DNA of 64,000 nucleotides from Zootoca vivipara (Eukaryota), in the NCBI RefSeq assembly GCF_963506605.1, contig NC_083281.1, positions 42,780,001 to 42,844,000 of the forward strand, in the 5' to 3' direction. Positions 29,208-32,091 of this stretch are shown piece by piece (the first letter of the stretch is position 1; each line of letters opens with the position of its first letter). The notes under the pieces were generated by a model that worked only from the letters and a program-made list of their open reading frames with translations, did not search any database and had not been told where the DNA came from. Both the position numbers and the translations under genes were made by a program.

Positions 29208-29363
29208 TCAGCTGCACGCCCCCAGGGTGAGCTTGTCAAAGAGGTGCTCTCCCAAGCCATCCTGGGGCACTCCCAGGCGCCTCAAGTTAGATAGATGGTC
29301 TGCCAACTGCTTGATGGCCTTCACTTGTTCCTCCAAAAACTCAGACTTTAGAAAGTGACACAG
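29208..29363 (-). CDS. Ferritin-like gene, coding exon 4
   Basis: tgcag|CTG TGT CAC TTT...GCG TGC AGC TGA; encodes [20 protein letters not shown]...LFDKLTLG. Confidence 0.95.
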
Positions 29364-32091
29364 CTGCACAGAGAAGGCAAGCAAGGGAGGGAGAAGAATT
29401 GCTCAGGGCTTGCGCTTCCTTTTTCTTTTGAAACAGTCACTGGTGGTGAGTCCCAGCCCAGATCATCCTCACACCTGGGATCTGCTAGCTCAGAAAAAAA
29501 TAGATTTTGAATGCTCAAGGGCTTTGATACTAGATAAGACGAGCGCTGTGAGATCACATGAAAGTGATCTTGTGTATTATCATAGTGTGGCTGGGAAAGG
29601 CTTCTGCCTGAGCTATCATTGGCTCAAGCCAATGTTTGAGAATATGAAATAGTCTTTCCAAGGGGCTACCTGTCTCTAAATGTTGGGCCAACTCCTGGTC
29701 TGCATGTTTTGTTTAGAGATTCTAGTGTAGCCTTCCCCAACCTGGTGCCCTCCAGTTGGTTTGGGCTGCAACTCCCATCAGCCCGGACTCGCATGGCAAT
29801 GCTGGCTGGAGGAAGTTGTACTACAAAAATCCAGAGGGCACCAGGTGACTAGAATGAGCTTTTCAGTGCCTTCTCAGGGTCCTCCATTCTCCCCAAATGT
29901 CTACCCATTTATTTATTTTAATTTTGCTCACTAACCACAGGTGACATACATGAGGATCCTCCTTCTCCAGAGCCAGCTTGTGTAAGTCCAGGAGACCTTG
30001 GTTCACCTTTCCTTCCAGGCTTAGGGCACTCTGGAAGGCTTCAAGGCTAGACTGCCACTCATCCTGCTCTGGCTTCTGTTAAGGAGAGGCCGAGGAAGAA
30101 TTAGGTTAGCAAGACAGGCCTTGCCCTAATTTCCTATCAGAGTTCTTTGAGAGTATCAACAAGCATATAGATAGACATCCTACATCTTTGGTGGTGCTGT
30201 GACAAGGTGTTCTGCTTTTGGTCAGCAGTCTTTGAAGAAATCAGATTAATCTGTAATATAAATCCAACTCCTTTGTTAGCCTTGCTAGGAATAATAAATG
30301 AATCAAATCAACATTTATCTCATTGGGCGATGTTGGCACTGTTGCTGGTAGCCACTCATTTAGAAACAGCTATATTTTGGTGCGCTGCAACAGGCCTGGC
30401 AATAGACTCGTGGTATGTGCTCAGGTGTGGTCTGTAACCAGGACAAGGGCAAGATAAGTTCCTCATCCTTCTACTACGTATAGAATCCATCCATCTCCCA
30501 TTTGAGATGTGACCATCAGTCAAGACAACCTGCCCAGCCCCACAGAAACATCTGCATAGACCAGGCACCCCCAAACTGCGGCTCTCTAGATGTTTTGGCC
30601 TACAAGTCCCATGATCCCTAGCTAACAGGACCAGTAGTCAGGGATGATGGGAATTGTAGTCCAAAACATCTGGAGGGCCGAAGTTTGGGGATGCCTGGGA
30701 TAGACCTAGTGGATTAGAGTCTTTAATGTTCATTTTGAATGGGTTCTAAGTAGTGGTTCCAGCTTCAAGCTGCTGTTACACCTTTTTCCAAGGCACAAGA
30801 AATTTGCTGCTATTGTTTTAGTTTATTGTATTTTAAAGTATTTTATTCCATGTGAAAAGGCTTTTTTAATTTTAAAAGGCAAAATAAAAGATACAAGCAT
30901 ATAGATAGACATCCTGAAACTGGTAAACCAAACAGAGGTAGATGCCCTGATAGTGGCACCACAGGGAATGGACTAGTTTGCCCCAGTCGCTGGCTACTTT
31001 AATCAAGAAAGCAGACACCACACACCTGAATGTCTTGAAGAACGATGCACCCCCCTCGCTTGTTCTGGTATTTCAATAACATCTCTGCATATCCCCTCTT
31101 CTTGAGTGATTCCTCTTTCAAGAATGTAGCTACATGCTTGAGGGCAACATCATCACGGCTGAAGTAGTAGGACTGAGGTCAGGGAGGAGGAGAAGAACAG
31201 AAAAGTCCAGTCAATAATTAAGCGGACTATGCAGCAATTTAGCTGCTGTTTCAACCATCTGTGGATCAGGTTTAGGCAAAGGTGCCTGGCGGCTTTCTTA
31301 GTTCTTTGCTGCTAAAACATGGGAGCATGAAATTTGACCATTCACTGAGAACATTCCATTGGCAAGTGTTAGAATTTTCTGACAATTCCAGCCGGTCTCT
31401 TAAAATCTAAAGAATTATAAATCAATGTCAATATTGGCAAAACTGTTCAGTCTTTATTATGATGCACCTGTTGTTGTTAACAAGGCTGTTATGCTAAAGC
31501 AACCCAGGAAAATGACTCAGCCTTTACACTCTGACCTGACCAGTGACAGGAAATAGGGGACACTAACTGCCATGCCGGGGACCAACAGTAGCTTTGCTTA
31601 AAACGTTGGGAGTTCCAAATACGATTCATGGGAGAAACAGTGTTTGGATTTCAGGCAGGGCCAACACCAGGGTTGAGGAGATTCCCCAACTCTTGCTGGA
31701 CACCCCCCCCTCCCTGTCTAGGGTTTGTTGGCTTTGCCTGACATTTGCTCTAGCGCCACCTGCTGCTGACCTCCCTGCTTTCCACCCCACCAAGCACCAG
31801 CCACTGCTGAATGTTGCTTTTGGCACCAGCCGCATGAAATGTTCAGTTAAAACAGACTTGGGTCGGTGACACAACTCTCAGCCCCCTGCAACAGCACACA
31901 TGAGGTCATTTGACATGCACAAGGCAAAGGGGCTTCTCTCTGGTGATGCTCCCTCAAAACGCAAGAGAGATGAAAAAGCAAGCAGGTACCATGGAAAGAT
32001 AGACGTAACTGACATGAAGCTCCAGGTTGACCATGTGGTTCACAGCAGCCTCACAGTCCACGTGGTAGTTCTGCTGCACCTGGGAATTCAT
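29208..32091 (-). CDS. Ferritin heavy/middle-subunit-like protein, 176 aa, 4 exons, ferroxidase centre substituted
   Basis: Exons 32091-31990 (102 nt), 31172-31026 (147), 30075-29950 (126), 29363-29208 (156). Introns are phase 0, GT-AG, at the canonical vertebrate ferritin positions. Protein [176 protein letters not shown]. No stops or frameshifts. Confidence 0.95.
29950..30075 (-). CDS. Ferritin-like gene, coding exon 3
   Basis: aacag|AAG CCA GAG CAG GAT GAG TGG...GAT CCT CAT|gtatgt; encodes KPEQDEW...[15 protein letters not shown]. Confidence 0.95.
30562..30697. mobile_element. Palindromic hAT MITE (ACTACAA-TCCC family) in ferritin intron 2
   Basis: CAGGCACCCCCAAACT / AGTTTGGGGATGCCTG; TSD GCATAGAC/GGATAGAC; same family as 60206-60341 and 63798-63933. 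Confidence 0.8.
31026..31172 (-). CDS. Ferritin-like gene, coding exon 2
   Basis: ctcag|TCC TAC TAC TTC AGC CGT GAT GAT GTT GCC CTC...GAC ATT CAG|gtgtgt; RDDVAL and QNKRGG ferritin motifs. Confidence 0.95.
31990..32091 (-). CDS. Ferritin-like gene, coding exon 1
   Basis: ATG AAT TCC CAG GTG CAG CAG AAC TAC CAC...CTT TCC ATG|gtacct; encodes [34 protein letters not shown]. Confidence 0.93.

Follow-up and report, generated by a model that had tools for sequence, protein, structure and literature searches.

A ferritin gene between ZBTB8OS and ZBTB8A in Zootoca vivipara, probably an old intron-keeping squamate copy lacking ferroxidase residues

Introduction

Four short exons on the minus strand of a 64,000-nucleotide (nt) stretch of the genome of Zootoca vivipara (NCBI RefSeq assembly GCF_963506605.1, contig NC_083281.1, positions 42,780,001 to 42,844,000; this whole stretch is called the window hereafter, and positions are counted from its first letter) splice into a ferritin of 176 amino acids (aa), located between the genes ZBTB8OS and ZBTB8A. 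The locus raises the question of how a ferritin came to stand there and of what its product can still do. An earlier note, made from the letters of the window, had regarded the gene as hidden and had left its origin between a duplicate moved at the DNA level and an old ferritin locus lost in mammals.

The evidence described below makes it likely that this gene is an expressed and selectively maintained squamate paralogue encoding a non-catalytic subunit. The duplicate would have arisen at the DNA level, with its introns kept, from the 176-aa heavy-chain (H-type) ferritin of amphibians and sauropsids, and it would have been fixed just downstream of ZBTB8A prior to the squamate radiation, remaining there since then. 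As a gene it is ordinary; what may be novel is the recognition of a squamate-wide ferritin clade, ferroxidase-less and pore-altered, fixed beside ZBTB8A. A literature search retrieved no paper on this gene, on squamate ferritins or on any ferritin associated with ZBTB8A, nor on TsFerB, a solved ferritin considered at the end of this text.

Gene structure and identity

The four exons together encode an intact 176-aa ferritin with all introns lying between codons, as seen in the sequence, in the translation of each exon and by a script (Table 1). Vertebrate ferritin genes have this architecture, their four coding exons being separated by three phase-0 introns; lengths of 147 and 126 nt, as found here for the two middle exons, are the standard among them. 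The Pfam family Ferritin (PF00210) is matched by exons 2, 3 and 4 at the consecutive profile positions 24-71, 76-113 and 115-141. In addition, each single exon matches solved ferritins, with E-values from 1e-11 to 3e-17, at the chain positions 1-34, 35-83, 84-125 and 126-175, and these matches are far beyond chance. Thus, the description given in the earlier note stands in its structural part: translation, script, Pfam and structure matches agree with its four exons of 102, 147, 126 and 156 nt, the GT-AG phase-0 introns, the open frame and the AATAAA were found where it had placed them, and the protein motifs that it gave were correct. Its view that the gene is not a retrocopy is also borne out, since the gene has three introns (817, 950 and 586 nt), which are removed in transcripts.

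Regarding the public annotation, the four exon translations sit exactly at residues 1, 35, 84 and 126 of a protein of our collection (P0269), filling all 176 residues, and P0269 is the RefSeq entry XP_034973222.1, "ferritin heavy chain A-like [Zootoca vivipara]". The ferritin gene of the window is the one encoding this entry, and as a gene it is already known; the word hidden holds for the open reading frame track that the earlier note had before it, where the exons are missing, and fails for the public record. NCBI annotates the gene in Zootoca and about ten further squamates, and the lacertid orthologues share 95-99% identity with it (Podarcis muralis XP_028594974, Lacerta agilis XP_033013441, P. 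raffonei XP_053255067 and P. lilfordi). The search of protein representatives with exon 4 returned mostly fragmentary or merged gene models, and the model was reached from that search through a skink protein (P0004), its relative from Podarcis muralis (P0164) and the 90% cluster of the latter, which contains P0269. P0164 is identical in 168 of 176 residues to the four exon translations taken singly. P0269 stood in for the window gene in the alignment, the tree, the Pfam search and the complex modelling; as a full protein it matches PF00210 with an E-value of 9e-33, indicating a ferritin-like four-helix-bundle domain over its whole length.

Loss of the ferroxidase centre and altered pore

Residues are numbered here from Met 1, which equals the human H numbering minus 3. 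The Zootoca ferritin retains E24, Y31, E104 and Q138 (human H Glu27, Tyr34, Glu107 and Gln141), and it possesses K58, K59 and Y62 in place of the Glu, Glu and His of catalytic ferritins. The ligand set of an H-type ferroxidase centre is therefore incomplete, with human H Glu62 changed to Lys, His65 to Tyr and Glu61 also to Lys. The three-fold pore is altered as well, H128 and K131 replacing Asp131 and Glu134 of human H, so that it lacks the usual acidic pair.

These replacements were followed in 14 members of the clade defined below, comprising lacertids, Elgaria, Tiliqua, Lerista, Phrynosoma, Sceloporus, Anolis sagrei and the geckos Heteronotia, Paroedura and Euleptes. In all 14, E58 (human H Glu61) is replaced by Lys, E59 (Glu62) by Lys, Arg or Cys, E131 (Glu134) by Lys or Gln, and Y165 (Tyr168) by His; H62 (His65) is lost in 13 of the 14, while the change of D128 (Asp131) to His is found in lacertids only. 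All these residues are retained in most of the further relatives compared from squamates, turtles, tuatara, amphibians and fishes, and the few that have lost one or two of the ferroxidase residues include a second Zootoca ferritin (P0218), a tuatara ferritin (P0203) and a gharial ferritin (P0212).

Two observations on these last proteins can be added. P0218, encoded on a 78.3-Mb chromosome, belongs to an otherwise catalytic-looking squamate clade, yet it has Lys59 and Asp62, and therefore ferroxidase-ligand loss occurred more than once in lizard ferritins. The tuatara and gharial ferritins P0203 and P0212 are partly degenerate.

With regard to function, Fe(II) oxidation is presumed lost, since Lys and Tyr occupy two of the di-iron ligand positions and the adjacent Glu is also Lys. 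The protein would still fold and pair as a ferritin subunit; its own Fe(II) oxidation would be impossible, and to judge from the residues a homopolymer would take up iron poorly. In lacertids, the three-fold pore would be lined with His and Lys in place of Asp and Glu. The most likely role would be that of a non-catalytic subunit resembling a light (L) chain, co-assembling with catalytic H-type subunits and tuning the shell. A modelled heterodimer with the catalytic Zootoca ferritin P0239 reached a score of 0.71, the best control having 0.00, and may reflect memory of solved ferritin dimers; of 78 solved complexes, 51 attained this score, as did 2 of 108 mismatched pairs. Three runs agreed in at least 97% of the contacts, which are those of the usual two-fold interface, and the predicted local distance difference test (pLDDT) of the partner was at least 91.

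Concerning regulation, an Rfam scan of 28500-34500 with E-values up to 10 matched no family of iron-responsive elements (IRE). CAGTGA occurs only once upstream of the ATG (about 32277-32272), and by eye no stem pairs around it; the transcription start is mapped only approximately. As no IRE was detected, the level of the gene is probably not set by the system of the iron-regulatory proteins.

Phylogeny and linkage to ZBTB8A

A maximum-likelihood tree was calculated from 73 ferritins, among them 11 clade members, and without mammalian or bird FTH1 and FTL. The ferroxidase-less squamate ferritins of geckos, skinks, an anguid, lacertids and iguanians form one clade with a support of 100/98. Within it, geckos are sister to the remainder, lacertids and iguanians are each monophyletic, and the order follows roughly the species tree. 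When the seven diagnostic columns were removed, the clade was still monophyletic, with a value of 93 in the Shimodaira-Hasegawa-like approximate likelihood ratio test (SH-aLRT). It is nested in a larger sauropsid clade (100/97), starred in the tree, together with turtle and tuatara copies and the catalytic-looking squamate clade (100/99), and this sauropsid clade is the sister of the amphibian H-type ferritins. The duplication is old, predating the squamate radiation, and not recent.

Linkage was read from the homologues of the ZBTB8A BTB exon, comparing their contigs and locus tags with those of the ferritin homologues. In Phrynosoma platyrhinos, the ferritin (JD844_005209) and ZBTB8A (JD844_005210) have consecutive tags on one 27.09-Mb contig, and in Lerista edwardsae the two genes (lerEdw1_007248 and lerEdw1_007255, the identity of the latter having been checked) are seven tags apart on one 2.39-Mb scaffold. 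Both genes share a 29.83-Mb chromosome in Tiliqua scincoides and a 110.49-Mb chromosome in Anolis sagrei, the catalytic-looking paralogues of these two species being on other chromosomes. Meanwhile, in Emydura macquarii, the single turtle for which both genes were recorded, the ferritin is on a 14.9-Mb contig and ZBTB8A on an 8.2-Mb contig, and in the gharial they are found on different scaffolds of 50.3 and 21.9 Mb. Chromosomes of about 44 Mb carry the ferritin family in some other turtles, and chromosomes of 19-24 Mb carry ZBTB8A in others, the two sets of species being different. The linkage in iguanians and skinks, together with the separation in Emydura and the gharial, fits a copy placed before squamates diversified and not a vertebrate-old locus. 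Hence, of the two origins left by the earlier note, the DNA-level duplicate fits better, through the nested clade and the squamate linkage, and the old locus less well, the genes being on different contigs or scaffolds in Emydura and the gharial.

Transcription, splicing and sequence constraint

Reads of three RNA runs of the same species (X20 and X21 among them, about 6% of each run being sampled) and of a sample from a related lizard (X1) were placed on 28900-33400. Transcription of the ferritin gene, with splicing at the borders predicted, was seen strongly in X1 and weakly in the three own-species samples. Junction-spanning sequences, which the earlier note had proposed as a check, are present at all three borders in X1 contigs, with depths of 160 at the joint 31172/31990, 219 at 30075/31026 and 105 at 29363/29950, and one contig spans the complete exon 3 and exon 2. 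The outer parts 31990-32214 and 29123-29363 are covered at depths of 156 and 112, respectively, and intron contigs reach 5-12. In the own species, a handful of reads from X20 and X21 fall on exons 1, 2 and 3, their first mate lying in every case on the plus strand, the orientation that a minus-strand RNA gives in the usual stranded library, and a single X20 read spans 30075/31026.

Alternative joints were also noticed. In X1, the joint 29363/29936 (depth 53) adds 14 nt and shifts the frame, and the joint 31172/32185 omits the ATG portion of exon 1 and is equivalent to isoform X2 of Lacerta agilis. Isoforms of 141 aa from Lacerta and Podarcis (P0273 and P0271) use an alternative last exon within intron 3. 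As an observation apart, the upstream frame used by the L. agilis isoform X2 appears to hit a stop in the window.

Contig counts give 16 coding differences between X1 and the window, of which 11 positions are listed, falling in 10 codons; by script, 7 of the 10 readable changed codons are synonymous. The divergence is about 4.7% for intron contigs and about 3.0% for coding exons. Additionally, 14 species, from geckos to iguanians, have an unbroken reading frame.

Weighing of the explanations

Several points weigh against the gene being a maintained, non-catalytic squamate paralogue placed beside ZBTB8A before the radiation. The linkage is known at the level of contigs and locus tags, with adjacency for Phrynosoma only. 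In the tree, the clade has as a weakly supported sister (99/62) a gharial protein whose centre is partly degenerate, and constraining all squamate copies to one clade was not rejected by the approximately unbiased (AU) test (p = 0.38), so that the duplication can be dated only between the sauropsid ancestor and the squamate ancestor. The non-catalytic role is deduced from residues, and most of the glutamates by which mammalian L chains nucleate mineral are missing as well (K58, G61, with only E64 kept), so that the role may differ from that of a classical L chain. The modelled heterodimer points to likeness and is not proof of assembly by this copy, because ferritin dimers are already solved. 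Regarding transcription, own-species expression is very low in the three samples, whose tissues are coded, and about one third of the X1 joints use the alternative sites 29936 and 32185, not yielding the 176-aa protein. That X1 is RNA is only guessed, and its joined contigs could in principle come from a processed DNA copy; RNA is likelier because of the ratio of exon to intron depth.

Other explanations must be compared with this one. An ancient origin, in which a vertebrate ferritin locus (perhaps an ohnologue of FTH1 or FTL) would have stood beside ZBTB8A and ZBTB8OS from the start and been lost in mammals and other lineages, is improbable for this gene. Its parent family of 176-aa amphibian-type ferritins is indeed present in sharks, amphibians, turtles, tuatara and squamates, mammals and birds are missing from the best 120 matches in both ferritin searches, and the deep sauropsid portion of the tree is an unresolved polytomy. 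However, the clade is nested within the starred sauropsid clade instead of branching outside the group sister to amphibians, and the related ferritins of Emydura and the gharial, and to judge from chromosome sizes in different species those of other turtles, are off the contigs or chromosomes of ZBTB8A, as described above. Orthology to a light chain, either mammalian FTL or amphibian L, merely misnamed "heavy chain A-like", is very unlikely. Lys at human H Glu62 is shared with L chains, and the frog "light chain, oocyte isoform-like" protein P0265 has Lys-Lys at 58 and 59 likewise; yet P0265 branches outside the clade of sauropsid and amphibian H-type ferritins to which this gene belongs, in a tree lacking mammalian FTL, the bullfrog H and middle (M) chains outscore the listed L chains for each exon, and L chains retain Asp131 and Glu134, while the clade is without Glu134. 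A simple orthologue of FTH1 or FTL, which the earlier note had named as an outcome that would undo its reading, is rated low too. The gene is not one of the remaining ferritin loci of Zootoca, which are on other chromosomes.

A pseudogene, either recently inactivated or never used and still open by chance, is hardly credible. The very low depth in the own-species samples, the non-productive joints and the loss of catalytic and pore residues would agree with decay, but the open frame is retained in 14 species of five major squamate lineages, identical replacements are common to all of them, indicating an old loss followed by conservation, synonymous changes exceed non-synonymous ones between X1 and the window, and spliced transcripts are abundant in X1. 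The recent pseudogene that the earlier note had kept in mind is thus set aside by the spliced reads and by the frame open across these species. Returning to the maintained squamate paralogue, a bolder form of it is tentative and rather doubtful: squamates may have evolved their own non-catalytic H-derived subunit independently of the mammalian and amphibian light chains, with a basic pore, without an IRE and beside ZBTB8A before their radiation, and this subunit might replace a light chain or serve outside iron storage.

The locus and its neighbours

The gene order in the window is RBBP4 (minus), ZBTB8OS (plus), the ferritin (minus), ZBTB8A (minus) and ZBTB8B (minus), in agreement with the position between ZBTB8OS and ZBTB8A claimed by the earlier note, which is confirmed by the Archease exons of the former and by the BTB homologues of the latter. 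RBBP4 was recognised by eye only, without a Pfam match. ZBTB8OS converges on the 3' end of the ferritin gene, and ZBTB8A lies upstream of it on the same strand, its name being that of the majority of the 120 best homologues (70-88% identity). The ferritin therein would represent a dated, intron-preserving gene insertion in the otherwise conserved RBBP4-ZBTB8OS-ZBTB8A-ZBTB8B block.

Table 1. Coordinates in the window of the ferritin gene and of its flanking genes (CDS, coding sequence; UTR, untranslated region)
Feature	Position	Strand	Details
Ferritin exon 1	CDS 32091-31990	minus	34 codons from ATG, 102 nt; 5' UTR to at least 32214; translation and X1 contig
Ferritin intron 1	31173-31989	minus	817 nt, GT..AG, phase 0; script; precisely spliced out in X1 contig
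Ferritin exon 2	31026-31172	minus	147 nt, residues 35-83; carries K58, K59, Y62
Ferritin intron 2	30076-31025	minus	950 nt, GT..AG, phase 0; holds palindromic repeat at about 30561-30711
Ferritin exon 3	29950-30075	minus	126 nt, residues 84-125; translation, Pfam, structure matches, reads
Ferritin intron 3	29364-29949	minus	586 nt, GT..AG, phase 0; alternative donor 29936 and alternative last exon inside
Ferritin exon 4, coding	CDS 29363-29208	minus	156 nt, 51 codons and TGA stop 29210-29208; carries H128, K131, H165
Ferritin exon 4, full extent	29123-29363	minus	3' UTR to about 29123; X1 contig
Polyadenylation signal AATAAA	29146-29151	minus	about 23 nt upstream of transcript contig end
ZBTB8OS (archease)	21814-25741	plus	first coding exon near 21814; Archease exons 24470-24619, 25460-25741; Pfam PF01951, E 3e-12 and 1e-3
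ZBTB8A	35957-41362	minus	BTB exon 40364-41362; last coding open reading frame 35957-36568; Pfam BTB, E 1e-28

Some further elements were observed in the window. Over the palindromic, high-copy repeat of intron 2 (30561-30711), each of the three own-species runs has an RNA depth of about 1,200-1,900 on either strand and many joints of the "opposite strands" type. Rfam mir-5408 matches the repeat on both strands with 50-52 bits, the gathering score being 90 and thus not reached. The repeat resembles a hairpin-forming element of the type of miniature inverted-repeat transposable elements (MITE) or short interspersed nuclear elements (SINE), transcribed from many loci and not a feature of the ferritin. 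Other interspersed repeats are located at 29655-29805, with many partly fitting RNA reads, and at about 33279-33400 and 31718-31800, which share a motif; the read depth at these repeats is due to the repeat family and not to ferritin exons. A 321-aa open frame on the minus strand at 1415-2380, bearing a reverse-transcriptase-like YADD motif, is probably a fragment of a long interspersed nuclear element (LINE). The GC-rich region 42000-46000 (0.57-0.60) probably corresponds to the promoter and first exon of ZBTB8A, and a smaller GC-rich patch is found at 33400-34100, between ZBTB8A and the ferritin gene.

Comparison with known ferritins

The Zootoca protein is identical throughout to XP_034973222.1, whose automatic name implies a catalytic H chain and is contradicted by the residues. 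The same automatic naming labels the whole squamate clade "heavy chain A-like", and every member compared is without the catalytic residues that define a heavy chain. A close likeness is seen with the bullfrog H and M chains and with amphibian, turtle and tuatara ferritins of 176 aa named "heavy chain A/B-like", which have the same length, about 64-76% identity and exon ends aligning at residues 34/35, 83/84 and 125/126. In keeping with the resemblance to amphibian H/M subunits stated in the earlier note, bullfrog H (1bg7) and M (1mfr) are the top solved matches for exons 1, 3 and 4, the listed mammalian and bullfrog L chains being lower. The difference lies in the active residues: at positions 58, 59 and 62 the H/M-type ferritins possess Glu-Glu...His, and at 128 and 131 they have Asp/Glu, whereas the squamate clade has Lys-Lys...Tyr and (His)/Lys.

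Mammalian FTL is comparable in being without a ferroxidase centre, in having Lys at human H Glu62 and in the co-assembly with H-type subunits that would be expected. FTL sits at another locus, however, and the squamate gene arises inside the sauropsid H-type clade, according to the tree without mammalian FTL; in addition, the squamate clade has the pore Glu134 replaced, the cavity glutamates mostly missing and no IRE detected. FTHL17 and FTMT are also extra H-derived ferritin genes, but they are intronless retrocopies, while the squamate gene keeps three introns; FTHL17 has been reported without ferroxidase activity.

Finally, the top solved match to exon 2 is TsFerB (PDB 9x0l, 171 aa), which has Lys-Lys at the same two positions and Trp at the position of the lost ligand, and which is not among the best 60 matches of exons 1, 3 and 4. 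This protein may be a non-catalytic subunit that arose by convergence in a distant animal. The squamate clade looks like a further independent vertebrate ferritin subunit abandoning catalysis, here together with the acidic entry pore, and it is useful for asking what purpose non-catalytic ferritin subunits serve.

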